From Epithemia pelagica (lineage: Eukaryota; Protista; Bacillariophyta), in contig OX337239.1 of the NCBI GenBank assembly GCA_946965045.2, positions 1,178,001 to 1,242,000 on the forward strand: a stretch of 64,000 bases of DNA. Reading direction: 5' to 3'. Shown in pieces: positions 1 through 11,795 of the stretch. Position 1 is the stretch's first letter. The number at the start of each line of letters is the position of its first letter. The notes beneath the pieces were generated by a model that was not told where the DNA came from, did not search any database, and saw only the letters and a program-made list of their open reading frames with translations. Both the position numbers and the translations under genes were made by a program.

Positions 1-1942
1 AAAAATGATTCGAGTCATAATCCGTCCAGAACCATGGAAAGGTTGTGCTTGGTTTTGCAGTGGATGCTGATGAACTGGCCGTTTTGGACGACGAAGAGGT
101 CGACACATGCTTGTCCGAAGGAGTCTTGGTGGAAGATCGTCGACTTCGTCGGCGGGACGATGACAAAGAACTCGGTTTGGTGGAAGATATTGATTCTTGT
201 TCTTGCGAGGATGGTCGTCGTTTCTGCCTCCATTGCGTTGGCAAAAAGGCACCATCAGCATCTTCAACGTAATTGCGCAATCGATAATTCTTTTGCGGAT
301 GTCTCAATTTGTTCAACGCTCTAGCTTCCACCAACCGTACCCGATCTCGCGACATGTTCAAGGCCCGTGCGGTATCTGCCACAGTAGTACCCAAACTAAA
401 CGGACCAGGCGTTTTGTGTGATGGTTGCTGTTGTTGCAAGCCTCCGGTCGACTGACAAAATCCAAAACGATGCCATATCACTTGGCGTTCGATCGGGGAC
501 AGTTCGGTTTCCATGACGTGCCAAATATCTTGTTGCATGGCATCGTATTGGGCCGCTTCTTCGGGTGTAGGACAATCACTGGCCACCAGGTCACCCAGTG
601 TCGTGGTCGTCGTACTACTAGACGCAGTGGCACTGGCGGATGTGGAACTGCTGCTTGAAGTCGCCGAGCTACCACGTACAGCACCGGAACTGCTGCCACC
701 ACCACTGCTTGACTGTTTCGGTCCAGCAGGAAGTGGAGCTTCGAGGGACACAACATTGCGGGACGATTCTTGGTACCGACGAAGACGTTCTTCAGATAAT
801 CCAACACGTTGGGCCACAAGAGCCGAAAAAGACTCCGCCGAATGTTCATTCTTGTTGTCGTTGTTTTTCGGGCCGCGCCGAGAGGATTGTTGTTGCTCTT
901 GCAAGAGTTCCAATCGAGCGCGTCGAACTTTGCGCAACAACCCATGAACATGAGCGGGTAACCGAATGGCCCTTCCAATATCGCAGGCGGCTCGTCCAAT
1001 GCGTTGTCGAATCCAGTAGACGGCATAGGTGGAAAATCGAACGCCCTTGGTCGGACAAAACCGTTCGGCCGCTTCCAGTATACCGAGATTGCCCTCCTGA
1101 ATCAAATCGTGAACCGTCAAAATGGTTCCGACACTACCGGGTTCCATGCGCATGGCGTGTTGGAGATTGGAATAATGCTTCTTGGCCAAACTGGTGACCA
1201 ATCCGCCATTGGCAGTACACAAGGCCGTTCGGGCCGCTTGTCCCTTGTGCAAGACCAAGCGCAACTGGATAACCAAGGCGCGGTCCGTCGGGGTTGTCGA
1301 GGACGTCAAGGTGGCATTCGCCTCTTGCGCTCGTCGCCAGGCCTGAGCCCATTGTAACTCTGAAAGAGTTGTCATTGGTTTTTCTTGTTGCTGGACCAAC
1401 TCGTCACGCAGCCGAATGGCTTGTCGCATGGTTCTCAAATCTAAAACATATTGCACTTCTTGCTCACGTGTCAAAAATTTGGTCTTCTTCTGTGTCCTTG
1501 CTTTCTTTTGATTAATGCTGTTGGATGACAAGGATTGGACGCGCATGGTTTGCTTCTTCTTCCTCAAAGAACTTGATGACACCGCACTTTTCGTCGTAGT
1601 TCTTCTTGGTCTTGTTGTCGTGGTCCACTCTGGACTGGAAGAAAACTGGGAGGACGGTCGCGATTGTCCCGGTTGCAAGGGTTGAATTTGTCGAATCACC
1701 TGCACATCTCCAGCATCGTCGATCGGAGAGGTAGGCGAAGTCTTGGTTGTGGGAGAAGAAGAAGAACAAGATGACGGATCAATCAAGACATTGTTTGCCA
1801 AGAGAGGTGTCGTTTGAGGCGATTGAAAAGCAAGACTGGAGCTCGCCAGTAGGTGCAGTAGAAACAAGGAAATAGCCAAGCTTTTACCAGGACGGATATT
1901 GATTGCTATGGTTTGGGAGACTCTTGCTTGACAGGAAGTCAT
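1..1942 (-). CDS. Plastid-targeted RNA polymerase sigma-70 factor (3' end runs off the window start)
   Basis: Hand translation of an uninterrupted minus frame from ATG 1942 to the window edge; it has no stop, which is why it is absent from the ORF track. Region 1.2 FLTREQEVQY, region 2 DLIQEGNLGILEAAERFCPTKGVRFSTYAVYWIRQRI, region 3 AIRLPAHV...VVSLEAP, region 4 VADTARALNMSRDRVRLVEARALNKLRHP. N-terminus SLAISLFLLHLLASSSLAF-QSP is a signal peptide plus ASAF-type transit motif. Confidence 0.92.
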   Translation of the reverse strand, partial: MTSCQARVSQTIAINIRPGKSLAISLFLLHLLASSSLAFQSPQTTPLLANNVLIDPSSCSSSSPTTKTSPTSPIDDAGDVQVIRQIQPLQPGQSRPSSQFSSSPEWTTTTRPRRTTTKSAVSSSSLRKKKQTMRVQSLSSNSINQKKARTQKKTKFLTREQEVQYVLDLRTMRQAIRLRDELVQQQEKPMTTLSELQWAQAWRRAQEANATLTSSTTPTDRALVIQLRLVLHKGQAARTALCTANGGLVTSLAKKHYSNLQHAMRMEPGSVGTILTVHDLIQEGNLGILEAAERFCPTKGVRFSTYAVYWIRQRIGRAACDIGRAIRLPAHVHGLLRKVRRARLELLQEQQQSSRRGPKNNDNKNEHSAESFSALVAQRVGLSEERLRRYQESSRNVVSLEAPLPAGPKQSSSGGGSSSGAVRGSSATSSSSSTSASATASSSTTTTTLGDLVASDCPTPEEAAQYDAMQQDIWHVMETELSPIERQVIWHRFGFCQSTGGLQQQQPSHKTPGPFSLGTTVADTARALNMSRDRVRLVEARALNKLRHPQKNYRLRNYVEDADGAFLPTQWRQKRRPSSQEQESISSTKPSSLSSSRRRSRRSSTKTPSDKHVSTSSSSKTASSSASTAKPSTTFPWFWTDYDSNHF

Positions 1943-2662
1943 TGTAGTGATAATTTCTGCTTGATGCAATAATGTGAAACAGATATGTGAAGTCAAGAAA
2001 GGAAAGCGATTCAGAGACTTTAGAATGAGACCGGATCAATACTCTTGAAACGTAGCAGCAACTGTCAATGTGGGTACACGATGCGTGTTCCTTGTTCCTT
2101 GCGGTTGTCGGTTGCGTGCCAGAATGTGCAAGCCAAGAGACCTGTCTGCTTGTTTTTTTGGATGCTGGGGATGGGTGTATTTGCGAAGCAAGAGTTACTG
2201 TGATGGTGCCACTACGGGGCAATCAACTTGATTGGTCCGAGGCGAAAAACTACGTACGCGACGACGAATCTCGTGAGCTTGGGAGAATCTTTCTGTTCAG
2301 AGTGCCTGTTGTTGCTGCGTGTTTGTCGCAGGGGATGTTTGATTGGTCCAACAAGAGATACGTAAGAGGGGACTACAGTCGATCCAAGAGTACCCCGTTC
2401 GTTGCAGTTCGTTCTGGTCGCACTTTCCCTTGGACACGTGGGTCTGTGCGTGCCACTTCCACTCCACGTCGTGACTCGTGACATTCATGTTTCGCGTGGT
2501 GGCCAGGGGCCGTGGCCAGTGGCCACCGACTCACGTCTGTCTGTATGACGGGTACCCATCCCAGGTGGGGCTACCTCTACTTCCAATCCGAGATGGCCTA
2601 CAATAGGGTAGCCTTAACGCCATTCGCCTTGAGGCCGTGTTAGCACTTTTCGAGGACCATCT

Positions 2663-2718
2663 GTGCACCTCGATTTGACATACCTCGAGGTGCAATGATC
2701 CTCGTTTGGTGCACCTCG
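2663..2718. repeat. Element 1 left subterminal motif array (GTGCACCTCG x3, mixed orientation)
   Basis: GTGCACCTCG at 2663-2672 and 2709-2718; reverse copy CGAGGTGCA at 2686-2694. Confidence 0.85.
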
Positions 2719-2820
2719 CTGCTTATATCAAAATTAAAACCACACTTCGTTAGAGTTAACCAATCTGTCATTTTTTTCTCGTCACGTTGTCTTACGTCTC
2801 ATTCATTGCAGAACTTCAGC

Positions 2821-3384
2821 ATGTCATTCTCTGCTCCTGATTGCATTTCATCCACCTCCATGCCGGATGCCATCCCTGTTTACTCCAGTGCTCCGGAGTT
2901 TTACGAGGAAACTCGCGGCGAATGCGAGGCAGTTTGCCTCATGATGTCATCGGACGATGTCTGCATCGTCACCCCCGAAGGTGTTGTTTCCGACAAGCTT
3001 GATCGAGTGTACAAGACGCGTTTTGTGAAAGAAGACTGTTGCTTCGACAATGAACAAGCCGTGTTCGAAGCTGTCTCAAAGAATCTTGGATCAAAACACG
3101 AAGGCCGCCCTGTGTTTTGGCAACAAGTCTGCGCGGAATGCAAGCAAGACCCATGTGTGATCTTCCAGCATGGGTCTTTTATATATTCCATCCACATGCA
3201 TCTCCAGAAGCGCAACAAAACGAATCGCGAAATTCGTTTTCAGTTGTATCGCCGTCTCTCTCGAACTCTCCATGGAGAGCTTGGCCGTGGAAACCGCCGG
3301 CCTCTTCCTCCCTGTCTAGTTCGATTCGTCCGTGACATTCTACCGAATGAAGACGGAGAGGCTTATGTTGGTTTTCGTGCGTAA
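2821..3384 (+). CDS. piggyBac element 1 accessory protein (187 aa), C-terminal P2X7-ballast-like Cys/His domain
   Basis: ATG at 2821. C-terminus CAECKQDPC...TNREIRFQLYRRLSRTLHGELGRGNRRPLPPCLVRFVRDILPNEDGEAYVGF. About 44 of 88 residues are identical to the accessory ORF of element 2. Confidence 0.85.
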   Translation: MSFSAPDCISSTSMPDAIPVYSSAPEFYEETRGECEAVCLMMSSDDVCIVTPEGVVSDKLDRVYKTRFVKEDCCFDNEQAVFEAVSKNLGSKHEGRPVFWQQVCAECKQDPCVIFQHGSFIYSIHMHLQKRNKTNREIRFQLYRRLSRTLHGELGRGNRRPLPPCLVRFVRDILPNEDGEAYVGFRA

Positions 3385-3426
3385 ATATAGACCATGACTC
3401 TACATTGATACTTAGTCAAACTATTC

Positions 3427-6400
3427 TTACATTTCCACAATCTCATTTTCTTCGTCATCATCGTCATCATCATCACTTCGTCCTGATTGTAATTGTCGCT
3501 CATTATTCGCTGTGCCATTTCGACTACCTTGTTGACTGACATTTTGTCCTGATTGTGATTGTCCCTCATTATTTGTTGTGCCATTTTCACTACCTTCTTG
3601 GCTGGCCTCACGGTTGTCTACGATGTCGGACAGATCGTCAGTACTCTCCGACCGCTTCCGTCTCCTTGCTCCCAATCTCCCCACTTCCTTCAAACCGTGC
3701 GCCCTGCGAATTTCAGAGATTACAGGATGTCCCCTGTTGATAGTATAATCATATCGTCCACTAGCGTTGGTCATGAAACATTGCCGACCTGTTTCAGAAT
3801 GTAAAATTTCGAAACAGGTCATGCCATCAAATACCGGATGGCTGTGTATCTTCCACCCCTTTGCAGCTCTATCCTTCGAATGTGCTAGATGGGCCACTAG
3901 GCCACATTTCGCGCATCTACCAACGTTGGAGTACATCCCACCCATTGGCAGCTTCCCCTTCAACCATCGATATTCCATCATACAAACGTTGCATCTTGCC
4001 CGGCCTTTAATCTCTATCGGAACATGACCATCCGAACACTGTTGGTTGTTGTGAATTGTGGGATTCCTAGGGATGTAATCGACCACTGGTTCGTAGTCCA
4101 ACATACTTTGGGCAATTATTGTGTAGAAGCCGTGTCTTGTCAAGCGCTTTCTCCTTCCCCGTACTGGCTGCTCATCGCATGACAAATTCCATGCGATGTA
4201 GGCATTCAAAAGTGTAACGTCGGCAATTCCAAGGTAGACCTTTTTGTACCATTTCTTGTAGTGGCTTCGTTGTGAGAATCCCCCTCCATGACCCCTCATC
4301 TGGTCTCCCTTGTCTACGGATCCCATGTTCATTTGGTATCGGATCAATGGGTTGGGGCAATTCAATTCCTTTTTTTGTGAACCGACTTGTCTGCGAACAA
4401 CAGAGTGGCCAGTATCTTCTACACTCGACACAAAAGAAACGACCTTGCTGTCGACCCACTGCCCACAAACAATCCCATTTACAGCATCATGGACCACCTT
4501 GAAGGAACCGCGATTGTTCTTGGACTTGGACAAGTTCATATGTGTCTTGTCCCAACCTTTTCTATTTGACCGACAAGTTCCTGTTGAGAAGCAGTTAAAT
4601 CTCTCCCTGAGTATAACAGCAAGTTGGGGTGACATATACCTGTTGTCCATGCTTATATGATGCATCCCCTCTGTCTCTTTATGCAAACCTAGGGCATAAG
4701 CCGCATTGAGAACAGCCTTCATAGTCGTAGGAAATCGGTGTATACTGGGCCGGATGTACGAATTTGTCGCGTTCTTCCCCTGGTACACGTCCAAGTGTAG
4801 GATCGCATAATTGGCCGACGACGCCATGATGAAGAAGTCGACTCTAAACTTTTGGGGCTTATCTTTGTTGAACTGTCTGACCGGGCATTGTCGTGACCGA
4901 CAACCGATCCCCCCTTCGTCGAATGCAAGATCAGTTGGTACGTAGAAAGTCTTGCGTGCCGTCTCATTCAGTTGGTTTATGAGTAGTCGTAGTTGGTAGC
5001 ACTTGTCTCCCCCAGCTGCCGCTACCATTTTGTTTTCTGGATGGAATGCTCCCCTTATCTGCCTAAATCGATTGAGACTCATGTACTTCACGGCAAAACC
5101 TTTCGTTCCTTCGATTTCTATCGGAGGTACGTCCGGAGAAACATTGTACGTTTGATTGGTGGTTTGAAAGTAGGCAGTGTAGCCCCCACCATCTACCGGT
5201 TTCAGGGACATCATAAGTAGGATCCCCAAAAACCGATACATCTCTTGGATTGTCACGTCAGTCCACTTTTGCGAGTGGTAGTATCCATTCCGAGAAGCCT
5301 GTCTTAGCTTCAAGTGCGAATGATAATACTCATTCGTCGAGGCCGTAAGCTTTCTTATTATCGCGTCATTCAGCCCCCCACACCGTTGAAAGCATTCAAA
5401 CGGAGTGGAAAACGTATTCGATACTCCGGGCCGCAGGTTTTTCCCACCAGTATACATTGATTTATGACGTTGGTCGGTCCCAATGAAATTGTAACCCGGT
5501 GGGCTATCACGTTCCACGTACTTGAACACCAGACTCTGCAGAGTTTCAAGCAATGTTGTTCGGTCGTCGCTCGTTGATCCGTCGCCATTGTTTTCTTGTG
5601 CATTGTTTGTGTCGGCTTGGTTGGAATTCCCAGCAACAGGAGGTGGGTCCTCGTCTTCAGATACACCGCTGTCATCTTCGAAAACATCACCCGGTCGACT
5701 GTCATCATCACTTTTTTCATCGTATGCTTCCTCGTCGGAAGTATCCGATAGTACCTCTCCTTCATCGGCTCGCAGTGCACGTCGTGTCGTCCGGCGGTCG
5801 ACATGTTGCTGCGGTTGGATTGTTGCCTGGTTTTCTTGTGTCGCAAGGGGCGACTCATCAGGAATCATTGTTCGCAGTGTCGCTCTGCCTTGGGCGCGCA
5901 CAGTCTCCGATGGGGTGTCTTCGTTGTTGTTATGGTCTCCATTCGATTGTCGTCGGGCAGACAATCCGGTGGTTTGTGTTAATGGACTACGGACTTGGAC
6001 TTGGTTACCAACCACGGTGGGAATGCCTGGAGGGTTGTTGCTCTGTGGTTGCTGTGTCGTTGAAAAAGATTTCCAGTCAGCGATATACTTTTTCAAAAGA
6101 TTTTTCGTGGACTCTGTCGAAGTAAAGGAGGTGGACGACCATTCTAAGGGAATGTGTTCGTCCTGATGCCACTCAATCAGGAACATATAGTTGTTGCGTT
6201 TAGCCGGACAAGACACAATTCTTCCCGACAGCATATAAGGATTGGAAGAGGATCGGTCTGGAAATTTCGAAAGCAAGGAGTTCAAGAACTCGGACCTCAG
6301 CCAAAAGGTATGTGGCGCTCGTATTTTTTGCTTGGCGAATGAAAACCGATTCCTGCTCTGTTTCTGTCTGTTTTCTTGTTCAGGAGGACTTGGTTGTGCA

Positions 6401-6528
6401 GGACGACAATGTTGCTCTGGAGGGCGTTCTTCTGACGGGGGTTGCAGTGTAGGAGGACGAGTTTCGTCTTGAGTAATAACGACAGGGGTCTCATTTTGAG
6501 ATTCGTCTGGACCAGCGGCAGCAGACAT
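3427..6528 (-). CDS. piggyBac transposase (DDE_Tnp_1_7/PGBD-type), 1033 aa
   Basis: Catalytic motifs LAFDEGG, SMDNRYMSP, GSVDKGDQM. Also KPQKFRVDFF, WVDSKVV, KWYKKVYLGIADVTLLNAYI and a C-terminal Cys-rich CNVC...CAKC...H. ATG at 6528; no stops. Confidence 0.95.
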   Translation of the reverse strand: MSAAAGPDESQNETPVVITQDETRPPTLQPPSEERPPEQHCRPAQPSPPEQENRQKQSRNRFSFAKQKIRAPHTFWLRSEFLNSLLSKFPDRSSSNPYMLSGRIVSCPAKRNNYMFLIEWHQDEHIPLEWSSTSFTSTESTKNLLKKYIADWKSFSTTQQPQSNNPPGIPTVVGNQVQVRSPLTQTTGLSARRQSNGDHNNNEDTPSETVRAQGRATLRTMIPDESPLATQENQATIQPQQHVDRRTTRRALRADEGEVLSDTSDEEAYDEKSDDDSRPGDVFEDDSGVSEDEDPPPVAGNSNQADTNNAQENNGDGSTSDDRTTLLETLQSLVFKYVERDSPPGYNFIGTDQRHKSMYTGGKNLRPGVSNTFSTPFECFQRCGGLNDAIIRKLTASTNEYYHSHLKLRQASRNGYYHSQKWTDVTIQEMYRFLGILLMMSLKPVDGGGYTAYFQTTNQTYNVSPDVPPIEIEGTKGFAVKYMSLNRFRQIRGAFHPENKMVAAAGGDKCYQLRLLINQLNETARKTFYVPTDLAFDEGGIGCRSRQCPVRQFNKDKPQKFRVDFFIMASSANYAILHLDVYQGKNATNSYIRPSIHRFPTTMKAVLNAAYALGLHKETEGMHHISMDNRYMSPQLAVILRERFNCFSTGTCRSNRKGWDKTHMNLSKSKNNRGSFKVVHDAVNGIVCGQWVDSKVVSFVSSVEDTGHSVVRRQVGSQKKELNCPNPLIRYQMNMGSVDKGDQMRGHGGGFSQRSHYKKWYKKVYLGIADVTLLNAYIAWNLSCDEQPVRGRRKRLTRHGFYTIIAQSMLDYEPVVDYIPRNPTIHNNQQCSDGHVPIEIKGRARCNVCMMEYRWLKGKLPMGGMYSNVGRCAKCGLVAHLAHSKDRAAKGWKIHSHPVFDGMTCFEILHSETGRQCFMTNASGRYDYTINRGHPVISEIRRAHGLKEVGRLGARRRKRSESTDDLSDIVDNREASQEGSENGTTNNEGQSQSGQNVSQQGSRNGTANNERQLQSGRSDDDDDDDEENEIVEM

Positions 6529-6830
6529 TGGCGAACGATCAGTTACAACACTGTACAAATCGAATATTGGTTGTTGAAGACAACTAGTGGGTGGTACTTC
6601 TGCTTGGTCAGGTACAACGCAATGTCGAGACAGTCGTCGGGGTCTGAAACGAGGGACGAAAACTGAGGCAAGATGCCGATTCTTTTCTGGGAAATTTCAC
6701 GATGATGCAGTCAGAATTCAACTATAGTGTCTTAGAGTAAAATTTTCGTAATTTCATGCTCTATCGTTTGGAATGAGTCTTTGTCATGATAAGGAGGTAT
6801 AGAAAGAGATATGGATGATAATATGAGAGG

Positions 6831-6882
6831 GAGGTGCGTATGTGCACCTCGTTTTGTTTGGGAGGTGCATATGTGCACCTCG
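6831..6882. repeat. Element 1 right subterminal array: two quasi-palindromes GAGGTGC(G/A)TATGTGCACCTC, 31-bp period
   Basis: Units at 6831-6850 and 6862-6881; same core motif as the left end. Confidence 0.85.
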
Positions 6883-6988
6883 ATGTTGTATGGCGTTAAC
6901 GTTATGATCCTACTCCCTCTGGACCGTAATTGTGTAGCGCGCGACCAACAAGTAAAATTAGTCGCCTTAACGCCATTCGTAATCGGGC

Positions 6989-7036
6989 AGTAAATACACT
7001 ACTCGCATAATTTTGAGTAGTAAATACACTACTCGC
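6989..7036. repeat. Element 2 subterminal direct repeat AGTAAATACACTACTCGC x2 (30-bp period), with an inverted copy at the other end
   Basis: Copies at 6989-7006 and 7019-7036. ACTACTCGCATAA (6998-7010) is inverted at 11557-11569. Confidence 0.85.
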
Positions 7037-7325
7037 TTAATTTCCTTTCCACCCTACGTCGTCAATATCCACGTCATCTCTTTTTTGACCCGTCATTCTG
7101 ATAGATCTCGTCATTTGGAGCGTTTTGGTATATGACACCCTACACTAATTCTCAAGTTGTGATGGTCGTTTCCTCGTTCAAAAAATCGCTACTTTCCCTC
7201 ATTTTTCTTCCTTGACGATAGAGGTCCGACTTTGACCATAACTCCTACATTCTAAAAGTCGTTTCGAGTGTCGGCAATCTCCATTCAAGTCCATAATAAC
7301 ATCAAGAAGTGGTGTACGGAAGGAT

Positions 7326-10300
7326 ATGTCGTCAACCTCGACCAATTCGGCCGGAGAGACCCAAACGTCACAGAGTGCATACTCTCAGTCGTTACTCGAT
7401 TCATCTCAAGAAGCCAACGAATCAAGTCAAGCATCCTCCAGACCAGTTTCTGTTCCTACGCGACGACAGCCACAACAACGCAATCGGTTCTCCTACGCAA
7501 GAAGAAAGTTGATCGCTCCACATTCATTCTGGCTCGATCGGAATTTTCTCAACCGGTTCACTGCCACATTTCCTGGTCGAACAGTGAGCGCGCCGTTGTT
7601 GCTTCAGGGACAGATCCAAGCCTGTCCAACGAACAAGAATGGAAACGTTTATGTTGTATTTTGGAACCAAGCTGACCACCCAAATCTTGATCCAGCTTGG
7701 GTATGCCGTCATTACCCGTCGACCCAGTATTTCAAGGATCTCCTCAAAGACTACATCTCTGCCTACGACGATTGCAAACGTCGTCAGGATTCGACGGGAA
7801 ATACCTCTACGACCAACAACAACAACGCCGCTCCGGATTCTCGTCGTAACCAATTGTCTCCAACCGCCAATAATACACAACAAACTTCCACCACCTTGAC
7901 CCAGACCGACAATACACAGCCAACTTTGAACCAAGTCACGCAGACAAACAATACACAGCAGCTTTCGATGTCTTCGACCCGTGGCAATAATCGGGAAAGT
8001 GAAACCCCACTTTCGCACGATTCCAATGAACCTGATTTGCCTTCTCCCCAAGATGACGACAATTCTGATAACCAAGACATCCCATCGACAATTGAAAGGG
8101 CCCAACGTCGCGCTCAACTCCGAACTGCAGCTGCAGAAGATGGGTCACCTGCTCTGTCCAATCTCACAGACAACCAGCCAAGTCAAGGCATTACAGGCAA
8201 CACACCTCCAACCAATCCTGACTCTCGTCCCATACGCCTTTTTGGGAGCGGCAGTACTGTCACTAATGGAGAATCTGGTACCGCGACAGAGAACGCGTCA
8301 ATGCCTAGTCGGCGACTTCGACGACGACCCAATGACACAGAGGACTCAAGTGATTCTGAATCGGACGAAGATGGAGCGGACCCAGACGACGATTTGGAAC
8401 AAGACGAACAAGTTCCACGCCCAGACAATCCACTGGAGGACCAGAATGATTCGGACGATGAGGATGAAGAGGAAACTGAAGAAACACCCCCTCCCGTGCC
8501 CCCTCCACAACAAAACACAAATGCAGCACAACAAAACACAAATGAGACGAATGAGAACAACCAACCAGAACAAACCATTCGTCAACTCATGGATGCGTTG
8601 GTATTTTCATATCAAGAGACAGAACTTTCGGCTGAACCTACCGAATGGATTGGAAAAGACGCGAATCATCGTTCCATGTACAGTGGACCAGATGGTCTCA
8701 GGAATGGAGTTAGTGACAACTTTACCAATCCATACCAATGTTTCCAGTTTGTTGGTGGCCTGTCAAACTCGCTGATAGCAGATATGGCAACTGCTACGAA
8801 TGTTTATTTCCACGAGAAGATAAAACCAAACCTGGTGTCTCGTCGTGGATACTACCACTCACAAAAGTGGCAGAATGTCACTCTCGAAGAGATGACGAGA
8901 TTTCTAGGGATCATCCTGATGATGTCCCTTCGTCCCGTCGACGGAGGAGGATACGGTGCATATTTTCAAACTACAAATCGCATGTATAATGTCGGGGCCG
9001 GCCAACCGGCTATTGAAATCAAAGATAGCGCAGGATGGGCCAGTCAATATATGAAGTTAGCACGTTTCCGTCAGATTCGGGGGGCTTTCCACTTCGAGGA
9101 GAGTCCAAGCAGGCGTGGTGGTGACAAATGCCATCAGTTACGGAAGTTGATCACAGCCCTCAACGCAGCTTCAAAACGTAGCTTCCGGATCCCCAAAGAC
9201 ATGGCGTTCGACGAAGGTGGCATTGGATGCAGGTCACGGTACTGTCCGGTGAGACAGTATAACAAAGATAAACCCCAGAAGTTTCGGGTTGATTTTTTTA
9301 TATTGTCTTCTTCTTCCACCTACGCAATTCTTCATCTGGACGTTTATCAAGGAAAAAACACGTCCAATGCCTACATACGGCCGGAAGCTAAACAGCTCCC
9401 TACTACCATGAAGGCAGTCGTCAACGCCTGTTACGCATTGGGCATCCACAAGTTGACAGATGGTTACCGGCATCTGTCGATGGACAATCGATACGCTGCT
9501 CCGAAGTTGGCGGTCATCCTCCGCGACCGGCTCCGTCTTTTTTCCACTGGGACATGTCGGGCCAATAGGATTGGTTGGAATCGAACCAAGTTGAATTTGA
9601 AGCGGACAAAGACAAATCGGGGTAATTGCATCTTGTTTCATGACCCGGTGAATGGGCTCATCTTCGGGCAGTGGGTGGATTCGAAAACGGTGAACTTCGT
9701 AAGTTCCTACGAAGATTCTGGAAGTGGGATCGTCCTCCGCCAAGTGGGCAGTCAAAAAGTGGAGTTTGTTTGCCCTGTACCGCTTATACGGTACCAAATG
9801 AATATGGGCGGCGTTGATAATGGTGACCAGATGAGGTTTCAGTTCGGAGGATTTGCAACCCATTCACACTTCAAGAAATGGTATAAGAAATCTGGCTTCG
9901 CTGTGATTGATTGTATGCTACTCAACAGTTATATTGCTTGGAACCTTGCAGCAGGCAATCGTCCTCGTTCCCGTAAAACGAAGTTGTCGCGGCATGCATT
10001 TTACACAATCATTGCCCAAACAATGTGCAGCTACGTCGCTCCTCAGGAAGTAGATGCTTTGGCTCGTCGGACAAGAAACAACAACGAATCAACATGTAAC
10101 GATGGGCACTACCCAGTGGCGGTAGAAAGCAACAAACAAGTTGGATGTGCTGTGTGTATGCTGGAATATAGATGGAAGAAGCAAGAACTTAAGATGGGTG
10201 GGTTATTCAAGAACGTTGGGAGATGCGTCAAGTGTGGGATTGCGGCCCACACGGTGGCTTGCCAACACAAAGGAGAAGAAGGCTGGAAAATCCACAACCG

Positions 10301-10613
10301 GCCTGAGTTTCAGAACAAGACGTGCTTCGAAATCTTGCACTCATCAACAGGAAAAGAGATTTTCGTGGAGGCAGACGAGGGGTCTCGGTACACATACACG
10401 GTGAGAAAGAACCATCCCGTTGTGGCGGAACTACGGGAAGCACAAGGCTTGACATCAACGTTGACTCGGAAAAGAACACGCCAAGGAGCCGGAGAAACGC
10501 AACCACGTAGACGAAGACGACAAAATGAGAATGAAGAGTCGGATGCATCAAATACAGACAATGAGAACAACGAAGATAACGACGAAGATGATGAAGAGTT
10601 TGAGGCAGTGTAG
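7326..10613 (+). CDS. piggyBac transposase, 1095 aa
   Basis: MAFDEGG, SMDNRYAAP, GGVDNGDQM catalytic motifs. Also KPQKFRVDFF, KWYKK...IDCMLLNSYI and a Cys-rich CAVC...CVKC...H tail. Clearly homologous to the element 1 transposase. Confidence 0.95.
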   Translation: MSSTSTNSAGETQTSQSAYSQSLLDSSQEANESSQASSRPVSVPTRRQPQQRNRFSYARRKLIAPHSFWLDRNFLNRFTATFPGRTVSAPLLLQGQIQACPTNKNGNVYVVFWNQADHPNLDPAWVCRHYPSTQYFKDLLKDYISAYDDCKRRQDSTGNTSTTNNNNAAPDSRRNQLSPTANNTQQTSTTLTQTDNTQPTLNQVTQTNNTQQLSMSSTRGNNRESETPLSHDSNEPDLPSPQDDDNSDNQDIPSTIERAQRRAQLRTAAAEDGSPALSNLTDNQPSQGITGNTPPTNPDSRPIRLFGSGSTVTNGESGTATENASMPSRRLRRRPNDTEDSSDSESDEDGADPDDDLEQDEQVPRPDNPLEDQNDSDDEDEEETEETPPPVPPPQQNTNAAQQNTNETNENNQPEQTIRQLMDALVFSYQETELSAEPTEWIGKDANHRSMYSGPDGLRNGVSDNFTNPYQCFQFVGGLSNSLIADMATATNVYFHEKIKPNLVSRRGYYHSQKWQNVTLEEMTRFLGIILMMSLRPVDGGGYGAYFQTTNRMYNVGAGQPAIEIKDSAGWASQYMKLARFRQIRGAFHFEESPSRRGGDKCHQLRKLITALNAASKRSFRIPKDMAFDEGGIGCRSRYCPVRQYNKDKPQKFRVDFFILSSSSTYAILHLDVYQGKNTSNAYIRPEAKQLPTTMKAVVNACYALGIHKLTDGYRHLSMDNRYAAPKLAVILRDRLRLFSTGTCRANRIGWNRTKLNLKRTKTNRGNCILFHDPVNGLIFGQWVDSKTVNFVSSYEDSGSGIVLRQVGSQKVEFVCPVPLIRYQMNMGGVDNGDQMRFQFGGFATHSHFKKWYKKSGFAVIDCMLLNSYIAWNLAAGNRPRSRKTKLSRHAFYTIIAQTMCSYVAPQEVDALARRTRNNNESTCNDGHYPVAVESNKQVGCAVCMLEYRWKKQELKMGGLFKNVGRCVKCGIAAHTVACQHKGEEGWKIHNRPEFQNKTCFEILHSSTGKEIFVEADEGSRYTYTVRKNHPVVAELREAQGLTSTLTRKRTRQGAGETQPRRRRRQNENEESDASNTDNENNEDNDEDDEEFEAV

Positions 10614-10696
10614 TAAAAAACAGATCAACATATCAAATTGACATTCTAAGCAATATTCAGTTACTACTACGAGGATGTATTGACTCCCTGTGTTGC

Positions 10697-11363
10697 CTAA
10701 TGGTCAGTAGGAGCAGGAATGAAACCAGTATAAGGGTCGTCTGTGTTTTCATTCGGGAAATTTTCACGGACAAAGTCCACTAGGCAAGGAGGTAGTTCAA
10801 CACGGTTGCCCTTCCCCAGTGTGCCATAGAGCTTGTTGGTAAGGCGGCGGTACAAATGGTAGCGTATGGAACGGTTAGGCTTACCAAGGCCCTTGAGGTG
10901 CGTCGCAATATCGTGCATGTAAGGGAGGTGCTCAACAACTTGGCACGGGTTGAGTTTGCAAACGGGGCAAACATTCTCCCAAAACATGTATCCATGTTTA
11001 TTGCTAGAAGACTGTTGAGTATTGTTCAATTCATGAAGGATGCGGTCAATGCTTTCCATCGTCGCGTATTCTTCAGGAATAAAGCGGGTTTCAGTGCGTT
11101 CTTTGGCTTGGTGAACTACGTTGCCGTCCTGATTTGTTGTCATGACAAGAGACTTCTGCAGGGTAAAGGGCACAAACACTCCACTTGATGAACAGTTGTT
11201 GTCGGGGAGGTGGGTTTCTGCAATGTCGACAGATTCGCTGAATGCTAAAAGACAAAACAAAAATGAGGTGAGGATCATTTGCGCACCGTGAATGGGTGCG
11301 ATAACAACTTTTGGTATAATCGTTCCGTACAAACACACCTTCCATCATACCCGGGTCATCCAT
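10697..11363 (-). CDS. piggyBac element 2 accessory protein (~190 aa, 2 predicted exons), C-terminal P2X7-ballast-like Cys/His domain
   Basis: Exon 1 11363-11339 (MDDPGMME), GT-AG intron 11338-11245 (94 bp), exon 2 11244-10697 in frame. C-terminus CPVCKLNPC...PNRSIRYHLYRRLTNKLYGTLGKGNRVELPPCLVDFVRENFPNENTDDPYTGF. Confidence 0.82.
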
Positions 11364-11795
11364 GGTTGCGTTGTGGTTTGGTTTGACAATTCAATGACCC
11401 CAATGACATAGTGCAATGAGATCAGTCAATGCATTGGATACTACAGCGCGATGAAAGCAACAAAAATGATGCTGGCGGAGAGTTAAAACGATCTGTTTTC
11501 AAACACGGTTAAGGCGCGAGCAGTATAAGCGAGCATAACCACTAATCCCATAAATTTTATGCGAGTAGTAAATTGGTTGCTCGCTAGTGCTTAAAACGCG
11601 TTCCTTACGAATGGCGTTAATACATCACGTAGACCCTGGTACAAACCTACGGGGAACTGGCCGGCTCATTCGGAGTCGAATTTTAGAGATGAACATTCCA
11701 CGACACACGTGCCTTCAAATAAGTAGAAAAACTATTTAACGTCAAATATAACGACTAAGGACTGATAGATAAGCTTTTTTCCGCGCCTGCATGCT

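Follow-up and report, generated by a model that had tools for sequence, protein, structure and literature searches.

The ballast domain of the ion channel P2X7 has a solved structure and an obscure function. As defined by Rump et al. 2020 (PMC7016195), from which the ligand residues of the rat protein were also taken, its ZCD combines cysteine cluster 1 (PxWCxCx2C), cluster 2 (LCCRx3GxC) and cluster 3, (L/I/V)PSC(C/S)-x3-IR-x2-(F/Y)P-x5-Y(S/T)G, with 7-8 zinc-coordinating cysteines in total, and guanosine diphosphate (GDP) is held by R546, H547, R574, R578 and K583; in invertebrate ZCDs the R546 and R578 types are kept and the others not (PMC7016195), a pattern that recurs in the accessory proteins described below. 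The ballast fold was recognised as that of the KolX protein of Kolobok transposons, and KolX is the probable source of both the tail of P2X7 and zebrafish Nanor (Kojima & Bao 2022, Mob DNA 13:24, PMC9587614). According to the same paper, "a few piggyBac families", namely piggyBac-2_GrCh and piggyBac-14_PI, encode a KolX-like protein without most of the conserved cysteines, and the sequences piggyBac-2_GrCh_2p and piggyBac-14_PI_2p are given in its Data S6. Here we analyse two such two-gene elements of the diatom Epithemia pelagica, which lie in a stretch of 64,000 nucleotides (assembly GCA_946965045.2, contig OX337239.1, positions 1,178,001 to 1,242,000 of the forward strand), called the window below and used for all coordinates. 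A first-pass annotation of this DNA had implied that a piggyBac with a ballast-like partner was new; the combination had already been briefly described (PMC9587614), and no other paper using "KolX" in this sense, or dealing with two-gene piggyBacs in diatoms, was found in the literature. By their location, their similarity to P2RX7_C/KolX and the presence of only four conserved cysteines, the proteins of the window fit this KolX-like accessory type.

Two complete piggyBac elements lie head to head in the window, and in each of them a second gene for a protein of ~190 amino acids (aa), hereafter the accessory gene, stands tail-to-tail with the transposase, at the positions given by the first-pass annotation and within borders that were confirmed. 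Both display the attributes of the piggyBac superfamily, i.e. a TTAA duplication, a DDE_Tnp_1_7 transposase (PF13843) and short terminal plus subterminal repeats. The DDE_Tnp_1_7 profile of Pfam is covered in full by both transposases, which are 52% identical over 713 aa, and the stop codons of the convergent genes are 42 bp (element 1) and 83 bp (element 2) apart. The accessory proteins align over 148 aa with E 3e-32, and their C-terminal domains are 46% identical, close to the ~44 of 88 residues counted at first reading. The termini of the two elements do differ, as had been noticed: element 1 is bounded by 8-bp repeats, CGCCATTC / CGCCATAC (7/8 matching), and element 2 by a perfect 12-bp repeat, CGCCATTCGTAA (12/12), while the subterminal repeat is GTGCACCTCG, present four times, in the former and GAGTAGTAAAT, present twice, in the latter. 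In both cases the terminal repeats begin with CGCC and not with the canonical CCC. The subterminal 10-11-bp repeats (those of element 2 are at 7015 and 11563, for element 1 see Table 1) have the same orientation at both ends and are not inverted, which is unusual if they serve as symmetric transposase-binding sites. No further copies of either element were found elsewhere in the window.

Recent mobility was registered for both elements. Logan contigs from three runs of the same organism (X1, X2 and X3) were compared with the region; run labels are absent, and two of the three are clearly genome (DNA) assemblies with contigs up to 440-510 kb. Depth over element 1 is ~88 as compared with ~180-190 in the unique left flank, and an empty-site contig found in two DNA assemblies (depth 88 and 71) joins position 2613 to 6896, skipping 4,282 bp and leaving one TTAA. 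The half depth together with this joint shows element 1 to be hemizygous and present in a single copy, the other haplotype having kept the empty TTAA site intact. For element 2 the depth is ~421, which against ~88 for a haploid copy corresponds to ~5 near-identical haploid copies. Its empty sites contain a single TTAA, loose contig ends fall at 6970 and 11617, and contigs at depth ~900 pass from ...AGTCGCCTTAA (ending 6970) directly into TACATCACGT, the sequence beyond 11620. From these empty-site contigs it follows that element 2 was inserted into a ~10-copy repeat, other copies of which do not contain it. Element 2 lies, then, within another, more abundant repeat, and both elements have recently been mobile. 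Since the empty sites are seen in public assemblies of the same organism, the borders of the elements are proven independently. The depth outside element 2, at 6900-6966 and 11621-11700, amounts to ~900-6,000, compared with ~88 per haploid copy.

Table 1. Coordinates of the two piggyBac elements and their parts in the window
Feature	Coordinates	Strand	Basis and remarks
TTAA target-site duplication, left of element 1	2614..2617	.	direct reading and empty-site contig
Element 1, complete two-gene piggyBac, 4,278 bp	2618..6895	.	terminal repeats and TTAA flanks; single copy, hemizygous
Left subterminal repeats of element 1, GTGCACCTCG at 2663 and 2709	2663..2718	+	motif scan
Accessory gene 1, 187 aa, KolX-like / P2RX7_C-like	2821..3384	+	open reading frame (ORF), also open from ATG 2695; 38% identity to accessory 2
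Ballast-like C-terminal domain of accessory 1	3094..3381	+	alignments and column conservation
Transposase 1, piggyBac DDE_Tnp_1_7, ORF of 1,043 aa (~1,033 aa from first ATG)	3427..6558	-	Pfam E 7.5e-45
Right subterminal repeats of element 1, GTGCACCTCG at 6842 and 6873	6842..6882	+	motif scan
TTAA target-site duplication, right of element 1	6896..6899	.	direct reading and empty-site contig
Spacer between elements, 67 bp, part of repeated sequence	6900..6966	.	contig depth ~900-1,200 vs 88 and 421 for the elements
TTAA target-site duplication, left of element 2	6967..6970	.	direct reading and contigs
Element 2, complete two-gene piggyBac, 4,646 bp	6971..11616	.	~5 near-identical copies per haploid genome
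Transposase 2, piggyBac DDE_Tnp_1_7, 1,095 aa	7326..10613	+	Pfam E 1.7e-42
Accessory gene 2, firm body, 193 aa from ATG 11278	10697..11278	-	ORF, open to GTG 11338; relatives P0001-P0004 55-61% identical
Ballast-like C-terminal domain of accessory 2, residues 120-206 of GTG-started ORF	10721..10981	-	AlphaFold, PDB comparison, ESM Atlas
TTAA target-site duplication, right of element 2	11617..11620	.	direct reading and contigs

Relatives of the accessory proteins were collected by word-indexed searches and then by an exhaustive profile search, and in most of the informative cases their genes have the same kind of neighbour. Six close relatives (55-76% identical), all from one ENA assembly, stand tail-to-tail with a DDE_Tnp_1_7 gene in 6/6 cases, and so do distant members that are only 25-40% identical (L007, L013/L014, L015, L061 and L072); the arrangement is listed for L001-L007, L013-L015, L061, L072 and both elements of the window. 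Altogether the accessory gene adjoins a piggyBac transposase, in the same position and orientation, in 15 of the 17 informative cases, and the linked transposases share no more than 36-63% identity with those of the window. The pairing is consistent, accessory genes of type 1 being found with transposases of type 1 and those of type 2 with transposases of type 2. For ten loci, a small and phylogenetically non-independent sample, distance matrices of the accessory proteins and transposases are correlated (Mantel r 0.84, p 1e-4) and give the same sister pairs. The proportion of nonsynonymous differences between accessory genes (pN) is 0.14-0.32, as opposed to a saturated synonymous proportion (pS) of 0.70-0.83; because of this saturation the ratio of the corresponding rates (dN/dS) could be computed for one pair only and was 0.10. 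The idea of the first-pass annotation that the accessory gene is a retained functional module and not a random capture is thus sustained on all three counts it had named, i.e. linkage to PGBD transposases, accordance of the two proteins in their divergence and purifying selection. On the sequence evidence, the accessory gene has been inherited together with the transposase since before the two families split, and selection maintains the sequence of its product. A decaying relative of element 1 was also encountered (L005:8121-8684): one in-frame stop interrupts its accessory ORF, which is 76% identical apart from this, and its transposase is broken up into several ORFs. A scan of metagenome loci revealed mostly canonical seven-cysteine genes of the ZCD/KolX kind, carried on short contigs and lacking a piggyBac neighbour; the loci presumably come from animal-associated samples and are uninformative on the piggyBac-type subfamily.

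The family as a whole is large. At E <= 1e-3 the profile search returned 1,286 cluster representatives, 172 of them with E <= 1e-10. Their shared part is the C-terminal ~90 residues with the motif C-x2-C-x3-PC, then ~20 residues, N-x2-IR-x2-LYR, G-x-LG-[KR]-GNR-x2-LP-x-C, (F/Y)P and Y-x-GF; in accessory 1 it reads C-x2-C-x3-PC ... IR-x2-LYR ... G-x-LG-x-GNR-x2-LP-x-C ... FP ... Y-x-GF. Over 141 sequences the four cysteines are conserved to 99-100% (in accessory 2 these residues of the domain are Cys124, Cys127, Cys132 and Cys185, in the numbering of the GTG-started ORF), and near-invariance extends to R159 (95%), Y163 (98%), G172 (99%), G175 (96%), R179 (97%), P183 (98%), P195 (97%) and G205 (97%). 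N-terminal halves vary strongly between lineages, in contrast to the constant C-terminal domain, and in the proteins of the window this region is conserved, beta-rich and common only to close relatives. Its assignment to a divergent RPA70N-type OB fold was tried and rejected (hhalign probability 1.5%). Such a fold is joined N-terminally to the ballast-like domain in some other members, i.e. in L015:370-1083 (Pfam Rep-A_N, 33.4 bits at a cut-off of 26.7) and likewise in P0147 and P0150, and one more member gives a weak BRCA-2_OB1 match. The loop G-x-(L/M)G-[KR]-GNR-x2-LP-x-C is also present in P0092, an invertebrate ZCD protein of Cyprideis torosa with many cysteines (950 aa, two copies of the domain); vertebrate P2X7 has FGSQDMADFAILPSC in place of the GNR loop.

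It had been noticed at first reading that this motif lines up with the C-terminus of P2X7, and the likeness was substantiated as homology by profile search, by Pfam matches of relatives and by three structure searches. The curated gathering threshold of Pfam PF20478 (P2RX7_C) is 23.5 bits. Out of 142 accessory relatives 78 match this profile at E <= 0.01 (best 5.6e-8), and the piggyBac-linked L015 surpasses the threshold with 36.1 bits; as relatives reach it, the proteins of the window can be taken as divergent P2RX7_C members by transitive homology. Comparison of the 142-sequence profile with all PDB sequences gave essentially P2X7 only (9e3q_A, E 6.6e-6; 9e3m_A, 6e-5; 6u9v_A, 3e-3; also 6e-3), with an alignment that spans P2X7 residues 537-593. 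The AlphaFold model of the domain, built with 141 sequences, consists of three helices (pLDDT 85.2, pTM 0.73), and in a Foldseek-independent comparison with 48,161 PDB chains rat P2X7 (6u9v_A) ranked first with Z 6.0: residues 13-99 of the model are superimposed on 479-595, with 84 residues aligned, a root-mean-square deviation of 3.4 and 20% identity. In the ESM Atlas the top two shape matches are P2RX7_C clusters (TM 0.64 and 0.62). Cluster matches in the AlphaFold DB are mostly "P2X purinoreceptor 7 intracellular domain" proteins, the best being an uncharacterised protein of the KolX-like type (TM 0.69, 28% identity), and several of them carry accessions that we take to be of Phytophthora style.

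Some results weigh against this likeness. The direct Pfam comparison proposed in the first-pass annotation failed for both proteins of the window, since accessory 2 attains 14.9 bits (E 0.025) and accessory 1 gives no match. Foldseek found nothing in the PDB, also with the good domain model, and for a helical domain a Z of 6.0 is modest. The N-terminal half of the ballast with cysteine clusters 1 and 2 is largely missing in the accessory proteins, the first ~85 ballast residues (395-478) having no counterpart there. Searches of PDB sequences by phmmer with single proteins and with a 6-sequence profile gave no match, and a protein language-model search was uninformative. A full-length AlphaFold model from 6 sequences (pLDDT 59) produced weak IHF/HU-like and coat-protein matches in Foldseek, which concern the N-terminal beta region and were treated as noise. 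Judged by both alignment and model, the C-terminal ~90 aa are homologous to the last ~117 ballast residues of P2X7, and this homology is real but partial.

The part that is shared contains cluster 3. Together with the flanking motif it recurs nearly letter for letter in the proteins of the window (LPPCLVDFVRENFPNENTDDPYTG and LPPCLVRFVRDILPNEDGEAYVG), and its P, C, P, Y and G positions are conserved to 91-100% in the accessory family. Clusters 1 and 2 are reduced to the single C-x2-C-x3-PC, which leaves four cysteines instead of 7-8. For this reason a dinuclear zinc site is unlikely, and the domain probably holds one zinc ion. As to the nucleotide, the equivalent of R546 is R in 95% of sequences and that of R578 is R, H or K in 93%; the position of H547 is occupied by F, Y or H, and the equivalents of R574 and K583 are not conserved. 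The binding of two zinc ions and GDP/GTP, which the first-pass annotation named for P2X7, is not transferable as it stands, given four cysteines of 7-8 and counterparts of only R546 and R578 among the five ligands; by the same alignment, GDP binding by the accessory proteins is uncertain.

The 5' end of accessory gene 2 calls for separate consideration. The body of the gene stands as annotated at first, whereas its extension to 11363 does not in the simple form, as this ATG is out of frame with the body and presupposes a short intron. MD(D/A)-type starts resembling it (MDD...) occur upstream in the relatives L001, L002 and L004. A candidate start is the unspliced ATG at 11278; translation may also begin at ATG 11363 with a short intron, or at ATG 11551 with a 252-nt intron of the canonical GT..AG type, by which the frame is restored. 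Enumeration of splice sites yielded too many combinations to choose among, and the sole contig joint in this region (run X3, 11235 -> 11490) skips 254 nt as compared with the 252 nt of the intron. For accessory gene 1 the ATG at 2821 and the next residues are kept in the 76% identical L005. Run X3, which represents the same sample as DNA run X1 and has equal background depths, shows a depth of 5,000-9,400 over 10603-11246, i.e. over accessory gene 2, against ~418 on the adjoining transposase 2, and several variant contigs cover this segment; X1 and X2 are flat there. Run X3 may contain RNA, in which case accessory gene 2 would be strongly expressed and have an intron near its 5' end. In the transposases, a side observation concerns an N-terminal block of ~100 aa, 43% identical between residues 47-147 of transposase 2 (7464-7766) and 64-162 of transposase 1 (6073-6369), and followed by an acidic low-complexity region that is not conserved between them. 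The block has no Pfam match and is a candidate DNA-binding or partner-binding domain.

As a whole, these data are best explained, and in our estimation somewhat more probably so than otherwise, by assuming that the two elements of the window are autonomous, have moved recently and belong to a two-gene piggyBac lineage with a ballast-like cofactor. The gene for the accessory protein of ~190 aa reads inward from the end opposite to the transposase, and in the model the last ~90 residues of the protein form a compact three-helix domain. That it is an element-encoded transposition cofactor is a serious option, which we place a little short of probable. Such a cofactor would act with the transposase or at the ends of the element, in the manner of the second protein of PIF/Harbinger elements. 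One zinc ion would be bound by its four invariant cysteines. The invariant surface, which is basic and rich in glycine, comprises the R-x3-Y helix, the G-x-L-G-[KR]-G-N-R loop and, in the position of P2X7 R578, a basic residue; its ligand would carry phosphate and could be nucleic acid or, as in P2X7, a guanine nucleotide. Stable inheritance together with the transposase speaks for a cofactor, and a connection with DNA transactions is suggested by the association of the same domain with a second, unrelated DDE superfamily, Kolobok (PMC9587614), and by the RPA70N-type or BRCA2-type OB folds of a few piggyBac-type members. On the other side of the balance, the accessory gene is not present in any labelled RNA run. 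As most piggyBacs need nothing but their transposase to move, a cofactor is not mechanistically required.

This last property of piggyBac chemistry, which normally needs only the transposase, would be easier to reconcile with a conserved and co-inherited accessory protein if the latter were directed at the host, either as an anti-silencing or regulatory factor like VANC of VANDAL elements or as a dosage or self-inhibition regulator of the transposase. Variable N-terminal halves combined with a constant C-terminal domain are what can be expected of a module that docks on changing partners, and the depth of run X3, 10-20 times higher on accessory gene 2 than on the transposase, would imply far stronger expression of the former if these data are RNA. 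However, no similarity to any known silencing suppressor was found, and the occurrence of the domain in two unrelated DDE superfamilies, with OB folds in some members, points to DNA transactions rather than to chromatin. We therefore consider a host-directed role possible and rather unlikely.

Less credit still can be given to the assumption that the accessory gene is a passenger, i.e. a captured cellular gene or selfish cargo kept for reasons apart from mobility, and we regard it as improbable. ZCD proteins do occur as apparently free-standing animal genes (PMC7016195), and no transposase was found next to two members of the family, in the 3.4 kb of downstream sequence available for L046 and in 0.9 kb for L016, which counts against the cofactor as well. 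Yet one-off capture followed by neutral carriage is not expected to produce the same position and orientation in all other informative cases, next to transposases so distant from those of the window, nor the congruent divergence of the two proteins, nor strong purifying selection despite the multicopy state of the element. Finally, the supposition that the accessory ORFs are chance frames and their P2X7 likeness a coincidence of motifs, for which the weak direct Pfam match of one protein and the lack of a match for the other might be quoted, is refuted by the pairwise E value, by the number of cluster representatives, by the agreement of sequence and structure searches and by pN far below pS.

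To our knowledge, the transposon relatives of the ballast, KolX proteins, have never been studied experimentally, and with the two elements, which are small, intact and evidently mobile to this day, a system is at hand for testing the role of a ballast-like protein. The piggyBac-linked form makes up a deep lineage, widespread in marine eukaryote sequence data and not limited to "a few families". With 1,286 clusters, co-divergence with the transposase and strong purifying selection, a real function is very likely. One can go further and suppose that transposition requires the ballast-like protein as a portable second subunit, which was exchanged between Kolobok and piggyBac and couples transposition to guanine nucleotide or to DNA-repair factors, and that the function of the P2X7 ballast descends from that of a transposon cofactor. 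We offer this only tentatively and consider it doubtful; if true, the function of the P2X7 ballast could be worked out in small active elements of an alga. The lineage also strengthens the argument that the tail of P2X7 came from a mobile element, and the ability of the ballast fold to travel on transposons, suspected in the first-pass annotation, is seen with piggyBac here and with Kolobok in PMC9587614.

Among described systems, piggyBac-2_GrCh and piggyBac-14_PI are the closest: they too have a small second protein inside a piggyBac with most of the seven KolX cysteines absent, and in piggyBac-2_GrCh_2p the pattern C-x2-C-x3-PC ... Y ... G-x-LGKG-x-R-x2-(I/L)P-x-C ... P ... Y-x-GF is identical to that of the proteins of the window. 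The differences lie in the hosts, a red alga and an oomycete as compared with Epithemia pelagica and many marine-metagenome contigs, and in the conserved beta-rich N-terminal region, which the proteins of the window share only with their close relatives. KolX of the Kolobok Kol0 lineage is likewise an accessory protein of a DDE cut-and-paste transposon and has both the (L/I)P-x-C ... R ... (F/Y)P ... Y-x-G motif and the G-x-(L/M)G-x-GNR loop, but it accompanies a transposase of the Kolobok superfamily and not of piggyBac, keeps seven zinc cysteines and has a longer domain covering Pfam positions 45-192 (e.g. L039, 96.9 bits), whereas the piggyBac-type accessory proteins cover positions ~120-192 with four cysteines. 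With the P2X7 ballast (6u9v/6u9w) they share, besides probably the fold of residues 479-595, cluster 3 with its flanking motif and equivalents of R546, Y550, P570, C572, R578 and F581-P582, positions that are conserved across invertebrate ZCDs as well (Rump et al. 2020, PMC7016195). Unlike the ballast, they are not part of an ion channel, lack residues 395-478 and the equivalents of H547, R574 and K583, have four cysteines instead of 7-8 with probably one zinc ion in place of a dinuclear site, and contain the GNR loop that is replaced in P2X7. PIF/Harbinger elements provide a parallel of another sort, as a cut-and-paste lineage that stably carries a small non-catalytic second gene co-evolving with the transposase. 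For the Harbinger partner, a DNA-binding protein of the Myb/SANT type, functions in nuclear import and in binding the element ends have been demonstrated. The fold of the accessory protein is unrelated to this Myb-like partner, and the analogy is one of possible mechanism and not of family membership. The current picture is unchanged in kind, the elements of the window adding members to a briefly described type: on the KolX-like proteins of piggyBacs the earlier paper has one sentence and two sequences (PMC9587614), and what is new beyond it are the linkage statistics, selection, co-divergence, structure model and evidence of activity.

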